DNA of 64,000 bases from Camelus dromedarius (lineage: Eukaryota). This document shows positions 4,855 to 62,763 of the stretch, piece by piece (within the stretch, counting starts at the first letter, position 1; every line of letters starts with the position of its first letter). Position numbers and translations under genes: made by a program. The stretch covers positions 44,020,001-44,084,000 of the forward strand of contig NC_087453.1 of NCBI RefSeq assembly GCF_036321535.1, read 5' to 3'. Under the pieces are notes generated by a model. It saw only the letters and a program-made list of their open reading frames with translations, had not been told where the DNA came from and searched no databases.

Positions 4855-6727
4855 TTGGTTTCTGGTCTGGTATGCAAGGAGCTTGGAAGTCATCACTTCG
4901 TTTTAACAACTAGTAAAAAGCTGAACAAACTGGAACATCAACAACTCTTCTTAGATTCAACAGAGAAGTGATTCACAGAGCAATCTGCTGCCCCTTAAAT
5001 TAGAGAGAGGGAGAGGTGGCTACAGAGAATCACGACTTACTGGAGCAGAAACGTCCATGGGAACCAGCTCCAGGGTAGGAAAACCGGCACTGTAATTGAT
5101 GAATCTCTGGCAGCTTGGTGTGGACAATTCTGAGAAGTAAAAACTTCAGGAGAAGGCAGTCTTGGGGTTGGGAGGCTCTCGCACTTGTGAATTTTAACTC
5201 CAGGAACTCTAGCAGGCTCTCACAGTGAAGGATGGAGGCAAAGTTGATGAAATAAATCAAAGAATGAAAGAAATGGAGAGATACTCCATGTTCACGGGTA
5301 GGAGCTCAGCATAGTCAAGCTGTCAGCTCTAAATTCATCCATAGATTTAAGACAATCTCAATCAAAATCCCAGCAGGTTATTTTGTGGATACTAACAACC
5401 TGATTCTAAAGTGTACATGGAGGGTAGAAGGTATAATCTCAGAACAGCCAACACAATGTTTCACGAGTAGGACAAAGTTGGAGGGCTGTTGTTTTTAGAT
5501 ACAACACCAAAGGCAAGATCTGTTAAAGAAATAATTGGTAAGCTGGAAGTCATTAAAACTGAAAACTTCTGCTCTGTGAATAATACTGTCAGGAAAGCGA
5601 GAAGACAAGCCACAGACGGGGAGGACATATTTGCAAAAGACATACTTGATAAAAGACTATTGTCCAAAACATACAGAGAACTCTTAAAACTCATGAGGAA
5701 GTGAACAACCAGATTAAAAATGGGCCAAAGATCAGAACAGACACATCACCAGAGAAGATGTACAGATGGCAAATAAGCATCTGAAAAGATGCTCCACATC
5801 GTATGTCAGGAGGGAAATGCGAACTAAAACAACAGCGAGACACCACTACACACCTGTTAGAATGGCCGAAATCCTGAACGCTGACGGCACCAAGCGCTGG
5901 CAAGGATGTGGAGCTACGGGAAGCCCCTCTCGCTTCTGGGGGGGACGCACAGCGCTGCAGCCACTTTGGAAAGCAGGTTGGTTGTTTCTTACAAAATTAA
6001 ACACACTCTTACCATACGGTCCAGCAATCCCACTCTCGGTATTCACCCAGCGGAGCTGAAAACTCGTGAACACAAAAGCCTGCACATGGCTGTTTATAGC
6101 AAATGTACTCATAATTGCCAGAACTTGCAAGCAACCAAGTTGCCCTTCAGTAGGTGAGTGAAGAAATAAACTGTGGCACATGCTGGCGAAGGAATCTTAT
6201 TTAGCAATGAAAGAAATGAGCTATCAAACCATGAAGAGACGTGGAGGAAANNNNNNNNNNNNNNNNNNNNNNNNNNNNNNNNNNNNNNNNNNNNNNNNNN
6301 NNNNNNNNNNNNNNNNNNNNNNNNNNNNNNNNNNNNNNNNNNNNNNNNNNNNNNNNNNNNNNNNNNNNNNNNNNNNNNNNNNNNNNNNNNNNNNGTGATC
6401 GGCAGAACACAGACGATTTTTACGAAAGTGGAACTACTCTGTGTGGTACTGTAATGGTGTGGACGTGCCATTACACATTGGTCCAAACCCATGGAATGTA
6501 CACCACCAGGAGTGAGCCGTACTGTACACTGCGGACGCCGGGTGATTATGGTGTGTTAATTTGGGTTCTTCAGTTGTAGCAAATATACCACTTTGGTGGG
6601 GGATGTTGATTGTCGGGGAGGCTGTGCGTGTGCGGGGGACAGGGGCTGTACGGGAAATCTCTGTACCTTCCACTCAGTTGCTGTGAACCTAAAACTCCTC
6701 TAAAAATATAAGCATATTTTTTTAAAA
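4855..6727 (+). mobile_element. L1MC1/L1MCa-type LINE with large internal deletions (5' UTR, two ORF2 pieces, 3' UTR)
   Basis: 4855-5230 resembles the recalled L1MCa 5' end (aaggagcttggaagtcatcac...aaaaagctgaacaaactg). 5235-6250 are ORF2 remnants (IIGKLEVIKTENFCS..., HLKRCSTS..., TIRSSNPTLGI). 6395-6727 is the L1MC1 3' UTR (gggaaatctctgtaccttcc...gctgtgaacctaaaact). Confidence 0.85.
6251..6394. other. Assembly gap/masked run (144 N) inside L1
   Basis: N-run seen directly. Confidence 1.
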
Positions 6728-42596: not shown

Positions 42597-43283
42597 TTTT
42601 TTTTTTAACATTTTTTTTATTGATTTATAATCATTTTACAATGTTGTGTCAAATTCCAATGTAGAGCGTGATTTTTCAGTTATACATGAACATATATATA
42701 TTCATTGTCACATTTTTTTCTCTGTGAGCTACCATAAGACCTTGTATATATTTCCCTGTGCTATACAGTATAATCTTGTTTATCTATTCTACAATTTTGA
42801 AATCCCAGTCTGTCCCTTCCCACTCCCCACCCCCTTGGCAACCACAAGTTTATATTCTGTGTCTATGAGTCTGTTTCTGTTTTGTATTTATGCTTTGTTG
42901 TTTTTTTTTTTTTTTAGATTCCACATATGAGTGATCTCATATGGTATTTTTCTTTCTCTTTCTGGCTTACTTCACTTAGAATGACATTCTCCAGGAGCAT
43001 CCATGTTGCTGCAATGNNNNNNNNNNNNNNNNNNNNNNNNNNNNNNNNNNNNNNNNNNNNNNNNNNNNNNNNNNNNNNNNNNNNNNNNNNNNNNNNNNNN
43101 NNNNNNNNNNNNNNNNNNNNNNNNNNNNNNNNNNNNNNNNNNNNNNNNNNNNNNNNNNNNNNNNNNNNNNNTCCTGAAGTAGGGTTCCTTCTGGATATAA
43201 GCCCAGGAGCGGGATTCCTGGGTCTTATGGTAAGTCTATTCCTAGTCTTTTGAGGAACCTCCATACTGTTTTCCACAGTGGCT
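42597..43283 (-). mobile_element. Young camelid-type L1, 5'-truncated (same family as 1506-2049)
   Basis: Poly(T), antisense 3' UTR and ORF2 end. Perfect 16-bp TSD gaggggtgcctgcttt at 42581-42596 and 43284-43299. Confidence 0.95.
43017..43171. other. Assembly gap/masked run (155 N) inside L1
   Basis: N-run seen directly. Confidence 1.
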
Positions 43284-43454: not shown

Positions 43455-44352
43455 AATTTGTTTTGGAACTTTATGGAAGAATAATTGACAAAAAAAATTG
43501 TATATATTTAAAGTGTAAAACCTGATGATTTGATATACATATACCACTGCAGAGTGATGACCAAGATCAAGATAACTGACACATCGGTCAGCTCCATAGT
43601 TACCTCTGTGTGTGTATGTGTGTTTGTGTGAGAATGGTTACAATCTACTCTCAGCAGTTTTAACTATACTGCACTGCCTACAACTATAGTCACCATGTTG
43701 TACCTTAGGGCTTCAGAATTTATTCTTCTTATAATTGAATCACCCCATATCACCCTCTGCCCAGCCCCTGGCAACCCTCATTCTTTTCTCTGTTTCTATG
43801 AAGTCAGCTTTTTTTTTTTTTTAGATTCCATGTATAAATGAGGTCATACAATATGTGTCTTTCTCCATATGGCTTATTTCACTTAGCATAAATCCCTTAA
43901 GGTCTGTGCATGTCATAAATGTCAAGATTTCATTCTTTTTTCTGGGTGAATTATATTCCATTGCGCGCGTGCACACGCGCGCGTGTGTGTGTATGTGTGT
44001 ATATATCATATTTTAAAAAAATCCATTCATCCGTTGATGGATAATTAAGTTGTTTCCGTATCTCAGCTATTGTGAATAATGCTGCCGTCAACATGGGGGT
44101 GCAGACGTGTCTTCAAGATATTGATTTCATTTCCTTTGGAGAGATACCCAGGAGTGGAATTGCTGGATTGTATGGTAATTCTATTTTTAATTTTTTGAGG
44201 ACTCTCCGCGGTGTTTTCCGTGGTGGCTGTACCAGTTTACATTCCCACCAACAGTGCACGAGGGTTCCCTTTTGTCCCCATCCTCGCCAGCACTTGTTAT
44301 CTGTTGTTTTTTGATAATAGCCGTTCTTATAGGTGTGAAGTGATATATTATC
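43455..44352 (-). mobile_element. L1MA9-like 3' end with ORF2 C-terminal remnant
   Basis: Minus-strand [29 protein letters not shown]...[16 protein letters not shown], followed by 3' UTR. Confidence 0.9.
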
Positions 44353-44389
44353 GTAGTTGTAAGTCCCCTTTTCTTTTAAGTCAGACACT

Positions 44390-44512
44390 CTCTGTTCTCT
44401 AAGAGTGGTCCCCGGAAAGGCAGAAGGGCAGAAATAACATTACGCAGGAAATTTGTAGAAATTCACCTCAGCCCGGCTGCTTCCTTCCGGAGCTTTGGGG
44501 GTGGGGCCCAGC
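44390..44512 (+). mobile_element. MER5A, left portion (its remainder lies inverted at 45327-45365)
   Basis: ctgttctctaagagtggtccccgga...gaaatttgtagaaattc...tttgggggtggggcccagc, ending exactly at the Arthur1 terminus. Confidence 0.75.
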
Positions 44513-44732
44513 CAGCGGTGCGCTGGCAAAGTTTAACAACTGAGTCTCTAAAAAAAAAAAAAAGCAAATACGTATGTAAATAAGTTTATTATAAATTTTA
44601 CAGATATGCAGGCTACGTAGCACACAATTTACAAGTAATAATAATAAAATATTCAGTACTCCCTCTTATAAATTTCCTGTAGCACATTGATTTCCTCAGA
44701 ATATTTACATTGATTTTTGCCAAACTTTCGTC
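44513..44732 (-). mobile_element. Arthur1 (hAT-Tip100) 3' portion
   Basis: Terminus cagcggtgcgctggcaaagtttaacaactg, then aagtttattataaattttac...gcacacaatttacaagtaataat...ttgatttttgccaaactttcg, matching the recalled Arthur1 end. Confidence 0.75.
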
Positions 44733-44734
44733 TC

Positions 44735-44990
44735 TCCCCCCAGCCAATAAAACAGCTCCTGCCCACCATCACCTTCTACGACATCACTTTTCCTGTTTCC
44801 TTTGTAGCGCGTAGTAGTCCCAGTAATTATCCTGCTTGTCTGGCTTTTACTTGGTTTTTTATTCTCTCCCTCCTGGGATACAAACTCCTTCAGATCCGGG
44901 TCCTTGTCTGTCTCGCTCAGGGTTCTGCATCACCAGCATCCAGAACAGGCACATCACAGAGGCTTAATGAGCACTTGTTGAATAAATCAA
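44735..44990 (+). mobile_element. L2a 3' end (inside the inferred inversion)
   Basis: tacaaactccttcagatccgggtccttgtctgtctcgctc...ccagcatccagaacaggcacatcacagaggcttaatgagcacttgttgaataaat. Confidence 0.7.
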
Positions 44991-45326
44991 CCTACTTTAG
45001 ACTCAAGAAGACATGTCATTTGAGCAGGTGCACTGGCTGCAATTTTGTTTCGAGAGGATAAACTGAACCATAATTGGGTCTAGGGTTTATCTGGATCTCT
45101 ATTAATAGTTTACCAAACTGGGCTGAATCTGGAAGAGAAAAATCAAAGATTCAAAGTTGAAACCTTTTCTCATTCCTCTCTGCCTCTTTAGACAGATTTC
45201 TCCCATCCTCCCAAACTGAATTTGCCTAAACATTTAAGCACAGCATTAGGTTGGCCAGATCTTAGCACGTATCACTGGGTTAATTGCCGCTCAAAGCATT
45301 TCTTGTCCTCAGCCTCGGCTTTAGGC

Positions 45327-45365
45327 AGTGGTTCTCCACATTTAGCATCATCAGAATTACTGGCT
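45327..45365 (-). mobile_element. MER5A terminal piece (inside the inferred inversion)
   Basis: cagtggttctccacatttagcatcatcagaatt is the reverse complement of the MER5A right end. Confidence 0.65.
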
Positions 45366-46078
45366 CTATGATGTACTGGAGCGAGCCAGGGCAGCTCACG
45401 ACAGACGATTGTTAAACTGGTGACAATTTTGCAAGCCGATCGTGAAACACAGTTATCGTTAGAAAAGAAATAAAAAAATATGTATAATAAAGACGTTATG
45501 GTTTTTAACTAAATTAAAAACATTTTCTAACTATTGTACTTCCTGTTTCCGTGACGTCGCTCTTGAGGACATCTATCTATCGTGCTGGGTGGTGAAAACA
45601 GCATGAAACGGGGCCCTGCTGAGTCTCTTCCTCACTCCTGGTCCAGTGTCATGTGGCTTGAAATTGGCCGGGGAAGAAGTATTTACCCCACAGAGGCGGG
45701 CACATGCCACAGGTCCAGACCTGGCATATTATTTTGCTGATTGTCTAGACTTAAGAAAATGATGGAGAAAGTTTTAGTAATACAGATTAAATGTAAACAG
45801 GTCGGCCTGTAGCTCTTATACTGTGAATAGTGAAAAAACAAAAGTAAAGGTTTAAAACTGAGGAAACAGTCTTCCAGTATTTGCACATAAAATCCATTAT
45901 TCGATTCAGCAAAGAAGTTGCTCGTGTCATTGACAAACAAGTGACATTCAGATGCAACATACGTCTTCATTTCTTTCGCTTGCATCGTAACTCCTCAGTG
46001 TAAACAGAAATACCAATCAGCGTTCACGTCGGAATTACACTGATTCATCAATTGCGGCCGCACATTGTCTCTGATACC
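45366..46078 (+). mobile_element. Arthur1 (hAT-Tip100) 5' and central portion
   Basis: gtactggagcgagccagggcagctcacgacagacgattgttaaa...gcttgaaattggcc...gattgtctagacttaagaaaatgatggagaaa...gattcagcaaagaagttgctcgtgtcattgacaaacaagtg...gtcggaattacac...gatac. Confidence 0.8.
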
Positions 46079-46081
46079 AAA

Positions 46082-46520
46082 GTATCTGGGAGGGCCTCTT
46101 AGAGGAGGTGATCATTCAGTGACGAACTGAATGGCGAAAAGAATCCAGCCGTAGCATTCTGGGGTGAAGAGCATCCAGGCAGAGGGGACGGCAGTTGTAA
46201 AGGTCTTGAGGTGGAAACAGCCTTGCTGTGTGTAAGGCCTGCCTGGCAAGGAGGCCAGTAGGCCTGGGACAGGGTGAACAGGGTGGGGAAGACAGGAGAT
46301 TTGTCAGAAAGCAGACGGCAGGGGCCAGATCAGGTAAGGCCTTCTAGGCCACAGCAAATGTTTAGGATTTCATTCTAAGCGATGGGAAGCCTTTGGGAGG
46401 CTTAAAGCAAGGGAGTGATTGGTCTCATTTCTGCTTTAAAAAGATCACCGGCTGCTGAGTGGAGAATGGGCTGTATGCAGAAAGCAAGAGAGGAAGCCAG
46501 GAAATGCGTCGGGGGACTTG
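46082..46520 (-). mobile_element. L2a internal portion
   Basis: gggagggcctcttagaggaggtgatc...gagcatccaggcagaggggacggc...ggggccagatcaggtaaggcc...gatgggaagcc...ttaaaaagatcac. Confidence 0.85.
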
Positions 46521-48594
46521 CAAGAGTCCGTGGACCAGACACGGTGGTTCGGGATGGAAGTGGCCCGGCTCGGGGGGCTTTATAGGGAAGAGCAGATTCG
46601 ATGACAAATTCTTTATAAGTATAAAAGGAACCATTAACCCTACCATCTTTAAGCAAAATGGACTAGAATTCTCCGTGTCTATGCCTGTTAACACCTTGCC
46701 CACATTGGTCAATCTACTGCTTTCTACCTTCTTTACAGAATCATGTTTACAGTGTCCTAGGAAGGTGATGGCCTCTTCCTGGGGTCGATGCCCAAGGAGG
46801 CACCATTCGGAAGGTACTCCGTGAAGACTAATGCCACGGGCTTAGGTCGACAAGGGCCAAGCACGAGTGGGGAAGGGAGACCACCCTGGCCGCCCCTTGT
46901 ACCCGTGCAGGTGGCAGCAGCTATTACCGGTGTGTCTTTGTGCCCTTCCCACCCTGCCTGAATTGGGCAAGCAAGCCCCCCCGCTCGCATCTGGGGACTC
47001 CCACTTCTCCCATGTAACCGGGCCAGGTCGGGGTGTGCACTTGGTCAGGAGTGGGCCTGGCTCCCTAAGGACTCTGGCCTGCGGTGGCTTCAGCTGCGGC
47101 TGATTGACAGATGTCCTCTGGTGTGCATGGAACAGGAGCTGTGACCGGGAGGTGCACGGAGATCCTCAGCCTGCTGCTGAGGTCGTTACTAGGCTGCGTA
47201 TTTTGTACATTGTTTCACATACAGCTTTATTCACTGATTTAAAAAAGAAACGGACACAGTAGCACCTCATTTACTGCGCATTCTCTGCGAATGTGGCATT
47301 TCATATAAATGCACTTTTCCTATATGCCTTAAAGTGACAAGGCAGCTTTTTTTCCCACCATGAGTGGTTTTGAGCATTTTGGGGAGAAGTCTTTCTAAAG
47401 CAGGTGAGGCCCTTAAGCAGCACGTCCACGTGGTTTAACTTCCCCTGAGGACTCACGTTCGCCATTGTGATGGGAGTGACTCCTTTGCAACGTGACACAG
47501 CGACACAGCGGCTCCGTGCCCAAGGAAGCTGGCCTCCGTGTGAATCCCTTCATCCCCTTGCTCCTTCTGTGCAGAATCAGACCCTCCGTCCAGGGGTGTT
47601 CGTCACCAGCACCTACTCATAGAGCCCAGGGGTCACCCTTCACTGCTTCTTGTCAGCAAATTGGTGCTTTTACGAAGATGGCTTTTATTTGGGAGGTTTT
47701 GTCTAAGTTAGCTGGCCTGCTGTTCCTGAAAGCTGGAGTCTCCAGAAGCAATGACTGTGCTTTCTTTTCTCTTCTTTTTTTAAATCCATCTGAGTAGAAT
47801 GCTCTCTGTGTGACCCACCTACATTTGAGTATTACTGATCAATACAAAACCTTTTTATTACTGGTCCTGGTGCATATAAGCTGAGGAATACATGCGAGTC
47901 ATCAGAATGAGAAAGAAAAATGCCTCCTGGGTGATCCAAGCAGAAGCCGAAGGAAGAAGCTGACTCAGGGGCAGACCGGGAACCCCTCAGGATGTAAAAC
48001 AAGATCCGGGAGACCAGTGTCACCGGGCCCTGCCACTGTGGCCACGCCACCCCGTCCGGCCACGGGTCCAGCAGCCACGAATGGGGAGCCTTGGGGGGCC
48101 GTCACAGCTGCAGTGCACTGCAGGTTTTCTCAGAACTGGTTTGTGCCCTGAAAAGACCCTGCCTCCTAGGGGAGGTGACATCACGAAATCTTCTAGAGGG
48201 TCCCTACCCTGCTAGGATGTGGAGGAGCTGCCTTGCTCCCGAGTTTGCGCTGGGAAGAATTTGATGCAGGCATTTACTGGAAAACAGAAACGATGTCTTT
48301 CTTCCAGTCCCTGGGTTTTGGCGAGCAGAAGCCTCTTTCCAGTGCACTGGGGCGGACGTCCTTAGCTCAGCAGCAGCTAAGCTCCAACAGCAGGCTCGTG
48401 GGCGGCACGTGGAACGGGCTTCTCCGGGCGGCCAGACCCCAGACGTGCAGGTGGGAAGGGTCAGGGCTGCCGTCTGAACCAGACAGAGGAGCCAGGGGCC
48501 CAGAAAGTGTCCCTGTTTTGCCGGCTGTTTATTCTCTTCCTTTGGGGAAATATGTACTTATTTTGTAGCTATTTATACACAAATGCAGGTAATT

Positions 48595-50280
48595 TTTTTT
48601 TTTTAAATTGAAGTACGGAGTTGGGTTACAATGTTGTGTTAGTTTCTGGTGTACGGCAAAATGATTCATTATACACATATATATATTCTTTTTCATATTC
48701 TGTTCCATTATAGATTATTGTAAGATACTGAATATAGTTCCCTGTGCTCTACAGTAGGACCTTGATGGAGTCTATTTTATATGTAGTGGTGTGTATCTGT
48801 TAATCCCAAACTCCTCATTTATTCTTCCCTTCTGTCCCTTTCCCCTTTGGTAACCATAGGTTTGTTTTTGATGTCTGTGAGTCTGTTTCTGTTAGGTAAA
48901 TAAATTCATTTGTATCATTTTTTTAGATTCCACATATAAGCAATATCATATAATATTTGCCTTTCTCTGTCTGACTGACTTCACTTAGTATGATAATCTC
49001 TAGGTCCATCCACGTTGTTGCAAATGGCAATATTTCATTCTTTTTTGTGGCTGAGTAGTATTCCATTGCATACATATACCACATCTGCTTTATCCAGTCA
49101 TTTGTTGATAGTTACTTAGGTGGCTTCCATGTCTTGGCTATTGTAAATAGTGCTGCTGTGAACATTGGGGTGCATATGTCTTTTTGGATTATATGCCCAG
49201 GAGTGGGATTGCTGGATCATATGGTAAGTCTATTTTTAGTTTTTTAAAGAACCTTCATACTGTCCTCCATAGTGGCTGCACCAATTTACATTCCCACCAA
49301 CAGTGTAGGAGGGTCCCCTTCTCCACATCCTCTCCAGAGCTCATTATNNNNNNNNNNNNNNNNNNNNNNNNNNNNNNNNNNNNNNNNNNNNNNNNNNNNN
49401 NNNNNNNNNNNNNNNNNNNNNNNNNNNNNNNNNNNNNNNNNNNNNNNNNNNNNNNNNNNNNNNNNNNNNNNNNNNNNNNNNNNNNNNNNNNNNNNNNNNN
49501 NNNNNNNNNNNNNTTTTTTGATTGGGTGGTTAGTTTTTTTTGGTATTGAGCTGTATGAGCAGTTTGTATATTTTGGAAATTAAGCCCCTGTCATTTGCAT
49601 AGTTTGCAAGAATTTTCTCCCATCCCATAGGTAGTCTTTTTCATTTTGTTTATGGTTTCCTTTGCTGTGCTAAAGCTTGTAAGTTGGATTAGGTCCCATT
49701 TGTTTGTCTTTGCTTTTATTTCTTTTGCCTTAGGAGACTGACCTAAGAAAACATTGCTACAATTTATGCCAGAGAATGTTTTGCCTATGTTCTCTTCTAG
49801 GAGTTTTAGGTGTCATGTCTTATGTTTAAGTTTTTAAGCCATTTTGAGTTCATTTTTGTGTATGGCGTGAGGGAGTGTTCTGACTTCACTGATTTACACG
49901 TGACTGTCAAACTTTCCCAGCACCACTTGCTGAAGAGACTGTCTTTTCTCCATTGTGTATTCTTGTCTCTTTTGTTAAAGATTAATTGACCATAGGTCTG
50001 TGTTTCTGGACTCTCTATTCTGTTCCTTTGGTCCACGTGTCTGTTTTTGTGCCAGTATTACGCTGTTTTGCTTACTGTAGTTTTGCAGCATTGTCTGAAG
50101 TCTGGGAGGGTTATACCTCCAGCTTTGTTCTTTTTCCTCAGGATTGCTTTGGCAATTCTGGGTCTTTCATGATTCCATGTAAATTTTAATGATTATTTGT
50201 TCTATTTCTGTGAAAAATGGCATAGGTAATTTGATCAGGGTCACAGCAAATCTTTAGATGGTTTTGGATAGTATGGTTTT
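48595..50280 (-). mobile_element. Cetartiodactyl L1 (ORF2 3' part plus 3' UTR), contains 166 N at 49348-49513
   Basis: Poly(T), 3' UTR, and minus-strand ORF2 peptide [40 protein letters not shown]. Confidence 0.95.
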
Positions 50281-51829: not shown

Positions 51830-53420
51830 CTGTTTCAGGCCCCGCTGACCATTTTGCATCCCACCAGCAGTGAACAGGTGATCTTGTTCCACATTCTCAG
51901 CAGCAGTTGGTGTTGTCAGTGCTCCAGATTTTGGCCATTTTAATAAGAGTATCTTATTGTTGTTTTAATTTGCATTTCTCTGATGACACGTGATGTGGAG
52001 CATCTTTTCATATGCTTATTTTCCATCTGTACATCTTCTTTGGTGACTGTTAAAGTGTTTCACCCATTTTTAAATTGGTCTGTCCATTTTCTCATTGTTG
52101 AGTTTTAAAAGTTCTTTATATATTTTGGATAACTGTCCTTTATCAGATGTGTCTTTTGCAAATATCTTCTGCCAGTCTGTGGCTTTTCTTCTCTTTCTCT
52201 TGTGTCTTTCACAGAGCAGAGGCTTTACATTTTAATGAATTCTAGCTCATCAATTATTTCTCTCACAGATCATGCCTTTGGTATCTAAAAAGTCATCATC
52301 ATACCCTCGATCATCTAGGTTTTATCATTTTGCATCTTGTACTTACGTGGATAATACATTTTGTGTTAAGTTTTTGTGAAGGATGTAAGGTCCGTGTCTA
52401 GATGCACCTTAATCTATTCGCAAATGGCTGTCCGGTTGTTCCAGCACCGTTTGTTGAAGAGACTATATTTGCTCCATTGTATCGCCTTCACTCTTTTGTC
52501 AAGGATCAGTTGACTATATTTATGTGAGTCTATTTCTAGTCTCACTAGTATGTTTCATTGATCTGTTTGTCTCTTATTTCACCAATACCATGATATCTTG
52601 ATTACCATTGCTTTGTAATAAGTCTTGAAGTTGGGTAATGTCAATCTCCAATTTTGTTCTCCTTCAATGTTGTGTTGGTTATTCTGGGTTTTTGTCTGTC
52701 CATGTAAACTTTAGAATCTGTTGATATCCATAAAACAACTTGCTGGGATTTTTTGAGATTGCATTGAATCATAGGTCAAGTTGGGAAGAACTGACATCTT
52801 GACAATGTTGAGTCTTCATATCCATGAACATGGAATAGTTCTCCATTTCTTTAATTCGTCTTTAATGTCNNNNNNNNNNNNNNNNNNNNNNNNNNNNNNN
52901 NNNNNNNNNNNNNNNNNNNNNNNNNNNNNNNNNNNNNNNNNNNNNNNNNNNNNNNNNNNNNNNNNNNNNNNNNNNNNNNNNNNNNNNNNNNNNNNNNNNN
53001 NNNNNNNNNNNNNNNNNNNNNNTGATAGACTCTTGTATATTAACCTTATGTCATTGTATCCTCCAACCTTGCTATAGGTGCTTATTAGTTCCAGGAGGGT
53101 TTTTTTTGGGGGGGGGGTCAGTTCTTTCAGATTTTCTATAGAGACAATTATGTCATCTGTGAATAAAGGTAGTCCTATTTCTTCCTTTCCAATTTGTATG
53201 TTTTATTTCCTTTTCTTGTCTTATCGCATTAGCTAGAACTTCCAGTATGACATTGAAATGGAGCAGTAGGAGGGGCTGTCTTTAACTTGTGCTTGATCAT
53301 AGTGGAAAGCTTTGAGTTTCTCATCATTAAGTATGATGTTAGCTGTGGGGGTTTTTCAAGTTGAGGAAGTTTCTCCTTCCCAGTTTGCTAAGAGTTTTTA
53401 CCACAAGTGGCTGTTTGATT
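51830..53420 (-). mobile_element. L1MC/L1MB ORF2 fragment, contains 153 N at 52870-53022
   Basis: Antisense ORF2: ttaatttgcatttctctgatgac...ccagcaccgtttgttgaagagact...gttgggaagaactgacatcttgacaatgttgag...agctagaacttccagtatgacattgaa. Confidence 0.9.
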
Positions 53421-62056: not shown

Positions 62057-62763
62057 TTTTAAGAAATTGAAGCACAGTTGATTTACAATGTTGCATTAGT
62101 TTCTGGTGTACAGCATAGAGATTCAGTTATACATATATATTCTTTTTCATATTCTTTTTCATTATAGGTTATTGTAAGTTATCAAATATAGTTCCCTGTG
62201 CTCTACAATAGGTCCTTGTTGTTTATCTATTTTGTATATAACAGTTTGTATCTGCTAATCCCAAAATCCTAATTTATCCTTCCCCTCTTACCCCTTTTAG
62301 TAACCATAAGTTTGTTTTCTATGTCTGTGAGTCAGTTTCTGTTTTGTGTATCAGTTCATTTATGANNNNNNNNNNNNNNNNNNNNNNNNNNNNNNNNNNN
62401 NNNNNNNNNNNNNNNNNNNNNNNNNNNNNNNNNNNNNNNNNNNNNNNNNNNNNNNNNNNNNNNNNNNNNNNNNNNNNNNNNNNNNNNNNNNNNNNNNNNN
62501 NNNNNNNNNNNNNNNNNNNNNNNNNNNNNNNNNNNNNNNNNNNNNNGGGTGCATGTGTCTTTTCGAATTAGAGTTNNNNNNNNNNNNNNNNNNNNNNNNN
62601 NNNNNNNNNNNNNNNNNNNNNNNNNNNNNNNNNNNNNNNNNNNNNNNNNNNNNNNNNNNNNNNNNNNNNNNNNNNNNNNNNNNNNNNNNNNNNNNNNNNN
62701 NNNNNNNNNNNNNNNNNNNNNNNNNTCTCTGCAGCATTTATCATTTGTGGACTTTTTAATGAT
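62057..62763 (-). mobile_element. Cetartiodactyl L1 3' end, 5'-truncated, contains N-runs 62366-62546 and 62576-62725
   Basis: aattgaagcacagttgatttacaatg... 15-bp TSD cacaattta(a/g)ttttc at 62042-62056 and 62764-62778. Confidence 0.9.

Follow-up and report, generated by a model that had tools for sequence, protein, structure and literature searches.

Broken transposons point to a probable 1,348-bp microinversion in non-coding DNA of Camelus dromedarius

Kilobase-scale inversions in collinear mammalian DNA are a well-described class and are used as rare genomic changes, as set out by Chaisson, Raphael and Pevzner (2006, PNAS 103:19824) in the form cited in PMC2515873, and the microrearrangements between human and mouse have been put at about 10,000 (PMC1378107). 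Inversions also arise by NAHR between inverted repeats or transposons (e.g. PMC12368964). In the annotation of transposons, REANNOTATE defragments RepeatMasker hits into models of nested insertions; the same paper points out that rearrangements after insertion break the collinearity of the fragments, and defers the detection of inversions to future work (PMC2672092).

The locus described here lies in a window of 64,000 nucleotides, by which we mean the whole stretch of DNA analysed (contig NC_087453.1, positions 44,020,001 to 44,084,000; all positions below count from its first letter). Within it, pieces of a MER5A-like element, a hAT-like element and an L2a-like element occur in opposite orientations around a segment at 44733–46080. 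The segment resembles evolutionary microinversions in its kilobase scale, in its setting of otherwise collinear non-coding DNA and in being common to related species. Unlike the microinversions of Chaisson et al., which came from multi-genome alignment, it is a candidate read from the fragmented transposon fossils of one genome. The reasoning is that of REANNOTATE, in that collinear fragments of a single reference element are reunited to recover the history of insertions, in this case a hAT element nested within MER5A; it departs from REANNOTATE in that broken collinearity is itself the signal. As in NAHR inversions, transposon sequence is found at both breakpoints, but those elements have no relation to each other (a hAT at one breakpoint, an L2 at the other), and the segment lacks a flanking pair of inverted repeats. 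We regard the transposons at the breakpoints as bystanders that were cut, not as the cause of the inversion.

Layout of the element pieces and the two junctions

The region 44200–46700 was read directly and its junctions were extracted by script. Every string quoted in a preliminary description of this DNA was found at its place, and the coordinates given there hold. From the left, the layout begins with the 5' part of a MER5A-like hAT MITE (44390–44512, plus strand), which ends in ...GGGGTGGGGCCCAGC and whose degraded 5' tip abuts the 3' end of a young L1; as with the other MER5A and L2a pieces below, the family assignment is putative. It is directly followed by hAT-like piece 1 (44513–44732, minus strand), which the preliminary description called the 3' part of Arthur1, the human hAT family also known as MER69C (PMC5753468). 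This piece is AT-rich, with an A14 run at 44548–44561; on the plus strand it starts with cagcggtgcgctgg at 44513, its terminus CAGCGGTGCGCTGG pointing inward to the right.

The segment that we consider probably inverted relative to the ancestral arrangement, on the strength of its flipped joints and of the sharing of right-junction words, then extends over 1,348 bp (44733–46080). It opens with an L2a-like 3' end (44735–44990, plus strand) that runs up to ...TTGTTGAATAAATCAA, and continues with DNA that carries no element assignment (44991–45326; CpG o/e 0.28), of which no repeat copy was found in the window. A short MER5A-like right (3') terminal part follows (45327–45365, minus strand), which on the plus strand reads CAGTGGTTCTCCACATTTAGC... 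and is thus reverse-complemented with respect to the left part. Hard against it lies hAT-like piece 2 (45366–46078, plus strand), the 5' part of Arthur1 in the preliminary description, which starts with ctatgatgtactgg at 45366 and whose terminus CTATGATGTACTGG also points inward to the right. Each of the termini at 44513 and 45366 directly follows a piece resembling one MER5A end. Beyond the segment stands an L2a-like internal part that lacks its last ~256 bp (46081–46520, minus strand), with a broken 3' end at 46081/46082.

In the present arrangement the left junction reads ...CTTTCGTC|TCTCCCCCCAGCC (44732|44733) and the right junction ...CTGATACCAA|AGTATCTGGGAGG (46080|46081). Reverse-complementing 44733–46080 yields the joints ...GCCAAACTTTCGTC|TTGGTATCAGAGACAATG and ...GCTGTTTTATTGGCTGGGGGGAGA|AGTATCTGGGAGGGCCTC; a read from the un-inverted arrangement would run from ...CTTTCGTC to TTGGTATCAG... 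at one joint and from ...GGGGGGAGA to AGTATCTGG... at the other. Both restored joints of the preliminary description are hence reproduced, although its quoted versions omit 4–6 unassigned bases at each. The window contains six N runs, none of them within 1.5 kb of a breakpoint, the nearest being 43017–43171.

The hairpin GATAC-CAAA-GTATC, which the preliminary description placed at the right breakpoint, is indeed present across the right junction at 46073–46086. Perfect hairpins with a 5-bp stem and a 4-nt loop occur 121 times in the window, however, about one per 530 bp. Because this is the frequency expected by chance, the hairpin is uninformative, and we dropped it as a clue to mechanism. 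Turned the other way round, GTATC stands just to the right of both inferred ancestral breakpoints.

The present arrangement in independently assembled contigs

All 235 sampled 31-mers of 44300–46600 are present in contigs of 20 runs from 10 studies, every one labelled organism A. The left-junction 60-mer has fewer than two indexed words, so that this sharing, while consistent with the left joint, says little about it. The right junction is covered directly: in the 60-mer 46051–46110 every possible 31-mer spans 46080|46081, and its sampled words were complete (3 of 3, share 1.00) in 20 runs. These come from 8 studies, and their samples bear the label organism A, organism B or organism C, or no label. 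The right junction is genuine DNA, common to at least three differently labelled organisms. Junction-side 24-mers gave no match in two metagenome scans.

This result bears on two accounts of the locus. A mis-orientation of the segment by the assembler, which the preliminary description had entertained, might be suspected on account of the short length of the segment, the repeats at its borders and a left junction that indexed words do not cover directly. The right junction recurs in independently assembled contigs across those runs, studies and three labels, and no gap lies near the breakpoints; a junction that is genuine and shared removes this account, to which we give hardly any credence. 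The second account accepts the inversion as real and holds that it is still polymorphic, with an un-inverted allele segregating in one or more of these species. Contigs demonstrate the presence of an arrangement and not its absence, and of the three right-junction words just one is present in X47, a run of organism C; in four other runs with that label all three occur. The single 31-mer that starts at 46080 would be identical in the inverted and un-inverted arrangements. A SNP or a coverage gap is the simplest account of the words missing from X47, which could also reflect another allele. Against a segregating un-inverted allele stand the complete junction words in 20 runs under three organism labels and the presence of every sampled word of the 2.3 kb in 20 runs from 10 studies, and we judge it improbable. 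The earlier proposal of a lineage-specific or polymorphic inversion thus keeps its core, as an inversion is supported as the best reading, and is weakened in its other half, as a private variant or rare polymorphism is unlikely given the sharing of the right junction.

One flip weighed against separate fragments and twin priming

We think it probable that the locus records a fixed, lineage-specific microinversion of 1,348 bp, one break of which cut a MER5A-nested hAT fossil while its second break cut an L2a, with a polarity and element identities that we infer. In the ancestral order, a non-autonomous hAT element of ~935 bp would have sat inside a MER5A-like MITE, and ~340 bp of unassigned DNA and then a minus-strand L2a would have followed. 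One break would have fallen within the hAT element (now 44732|44733) and another within the L2a (now 46080|46081), and the 1,348 bp between them would have been rejoined in reverse. The event would postdate the three transposon insertions and predate the divergence of the three labelled organisms in which the right junction recurs.

As to mechanism, the joints leave room for no more than 1–2 nt of microhomology, with TC at the left joint and A at the right one, and a repeat search of 43500–47500 found no inverted repeat pair with one arm at each breakpoint. Since flanking inverted repeats are lacking, homologous recombination is unlikely, and we propose end joining of two double-strand breaks with 0–2 nt of microhomology; a replicative template switch could have given the same product. 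An NAHR-mediated inversion was rejected, the two breakpoints having no inverted homologous repeats.

As for the L2 pieces, 46082–46200 presumably matches, in reverse complement, the L2 3' region with the ending ...GAGGCCTTCCCTGA, and 44735 onward its continuation on the plus strand (...CCACCC..TAAAA... down to ...AATAAAT), so that the two would abut in the consensus but for about eight additional bases where they join. GC skew on the plus strand is -0.295 for 44733–44990 and +0.345 for 46081–46520, and an absolute skew of 0.30 is found in no more than 7.6% of windows of similar size. Such extreme skews, opposite in sign, would suit a single strand-asymmetric element that was broken and then had one half flipped, and give modest support to that reading.

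Of the MER5A pieces, 45327–45365 is presumably the reverse-complemented MER5A 3' end and 44400–44512 the MER5A 5' part; some 15–22 consensus bases would then be missing between them, and they would not be strictly contiguous. The terminal inverted repeats of the putative Arthur1, a hAT-Tip100 element, are weak. Anchored at their ends, the hAT termini agree at 8 of 14 positions (five of the six mismatches being transitions), and a local alignment of the first 60 nt of both ends reaches a score of 10, whereas shuffled sequence averages 12.7. A degenerate target-site duplication had likewise been described, with 5 of 8 matches; in the natural register, GGCCCAGC against AGCCAGTA gives 3 of 8, the count of 5 is reached only after a one-base shift into the element, and both counts are at the level of chance.

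Both hAT pieces are unusual in keeping CpG close to the frequency expected at random. The observed-to-expected ratio is 1.00 in 44513–44732 and 0.84 in 45366–46080, against 0.28–0.38 in the adjoining and intervening pieces, 0.40 in the whole window and a median of 0.35 in 700-bp windows of similar GC. With the segment flipped, the hAT pieces make up one block of retained CpG, a mild argument that they belong together. The CpG decay seen in neighbouring old elements, and expected of an old Arthur1, is absent from both pieces; ratios of 0.84–1.0 are unexpected for a very old element and cast some doubt on the Arthur1 label. The retention might reflect germline hypomethylation, constraint, or an element younger than that label suggests.

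In a further observation on these pieces, the perfect 10-mer AGTTTAACAA lies at 44530–44539 and its reverse complement at 45409–45418. After the flip the pair would be direct subterminal repeats, and could be a feature of the family, a motif derived from MER5A, or chance.

Two histories dispense with the inversion. Parts of one LINE on opposite strands recall the 5' inversions of L1 twin priming, which are common in L1 insertions, and an inversion of this type at the time of LINE insertion could in principle have set the L2 strands against each other. In twin priming the inverted part ends up immediately 5' of the direct part, and no other DNA separates the two. Here the minus-strand piece (46081–46520) is found past the 3' end (44990) of the plus-strand piece, at a distance of 1.1 kb, the MER5A end and hAT-like piece 2 stand between the two, and the orientations of the MER5A and hAT pieces, non-LINE elements that are flipped too, are left unexplained. 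With order and spacing wrong, the L1-type layout is excluded, and of all the accounts considered this is the one to which we give the least weight. LINE insertion, moreover, does not yield 3'-truncated copies, and the minus-strand L2 piece is 3'-truncated, so that a later break is needed in any case.

The stronger competitor holds that there was no inversion and that the opposite-strand pieces are independent fragments brought together by insertions and deletions. On this view one L2a inserted on its own with a 5' truncation, another L2a was truncated independently, and the two hAT or MER5A fragments are unrelated to each other. In its favour, a lone LINE insertion typically leaves a 5'-truncated 3' end like the 256 bp of L2 seen here, neither the terminal repeat nor the target-site duplication rises above chance, the MER5A parts presumably leave consensus bases missing between them, and families and consensus coordinates alike are putative. 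Yet such a history needs a 3'-truncated L2 that ends where the other L2 begins, and two MER5A ends each followed, in the same order, by a hAT-like CAG/CTA terminus. It further needs each of the three elements to be represented by complementary, non-overlapping pieces, the GC skews of the L2 pieces to be both extreme and opposite, and the two hAT pieces to have retained CpG alike. One flip explains all of these coincidences, and for that reason we prefer the inversion and consider independent fragments unlikely, if the least unlikely of its competitors. The inversion is the best and most economical reading of the sequence, and fits all that was observed.

Surroundings, gene content and biological meaning

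The DNA directly left of the MER5A piece is a 5'-truncated minus-strand L1 3' end (43809–44350), with poly-T at 43809–43822, ORF2 C-terminal remnants and a CpG o/e of ~0.8. This L1 seems young and is likely to have deleted or pushed aside the 5' tip of the MER5A. The possibility that this L1 was twin-primed was ruled out, as it is a plain minus-strand, 5'-truncated L1. Within it, 44087–44255 gives sub-threshold Rfam matches to mir-6130 (30 bits, against a gathering score of 117) and mir-562, which we regard as look-alikes of L1-derived microRNA families, not genes. L1-type reading frames also flank four of the six N runs in the window (6251–6394, 43017–43171, 49348–49513 and 62366–62725, the last entry spanning two runs; a further N run lies at 52870–53022), so that these look like masked L1 segments, not assembly gaps or exons. 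About 700 bp to the right of the inversion starts a GC-rich block (46700–48500; GC 0.51–0.63, CpG o/e ~0.45–0.5), in which no exon, Pfam domain or RNA family was recognised.

A screen of all stop-free segments of at least 55 aa in the window for exons yielded only L1 remnants, and ten stop-free pieces of the hAT DNA (outside 45727–45772) contained no Pfam domain that would mark a transposase remnant. Beside 45727–45772, Rfam searches at permissive E-values returned only chance-level matches and L1-derived microRNA look-alikes. No homologue of the 114-aa ORF that crosses the left junction turned up in the protein collection searched, and an exact look-up of a 57-aa ORF matched no contig. BLASTN and nhmmer comparisons of the flipped region with the rest of the window found no other copies of these elements; with no second copy in the window, no consensus could be built from the sequence, and the literature offered no usable printed consensus strings for the element families. 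The breakpoints and their vicinity are non-coding, with no exon, RNA family or protein domain detected, and no function is implied.

Very probably, then, this is an event of an ordinary, known kind, a microinversion that took place long ago in non-coding mammalian DNA. Given its non-coding location and the lack of any detected gene feature, no effect on the animal is expected. A more speculative and improbable reading is that the ~935-bp hAT fossil kept its CpGs because it lay within a germline-hypomethylated or constrained regulatory element, and that the inversion split this element in the common ancestor of the three labelled organisms; in a variant, X47 would carry the surviving un-inverted allele. 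If that reading were true, the inversion would be a rare genomic change that defines a clade and may have affected regulation. Inversions of kilobase scale seldom revert or recur and hence make clean phylogenetic characters; the present one could mark the clade in which it occurs, provided that its distribution among relatives has been established. The logic of broken transposons can reveal such inversions from one genome.
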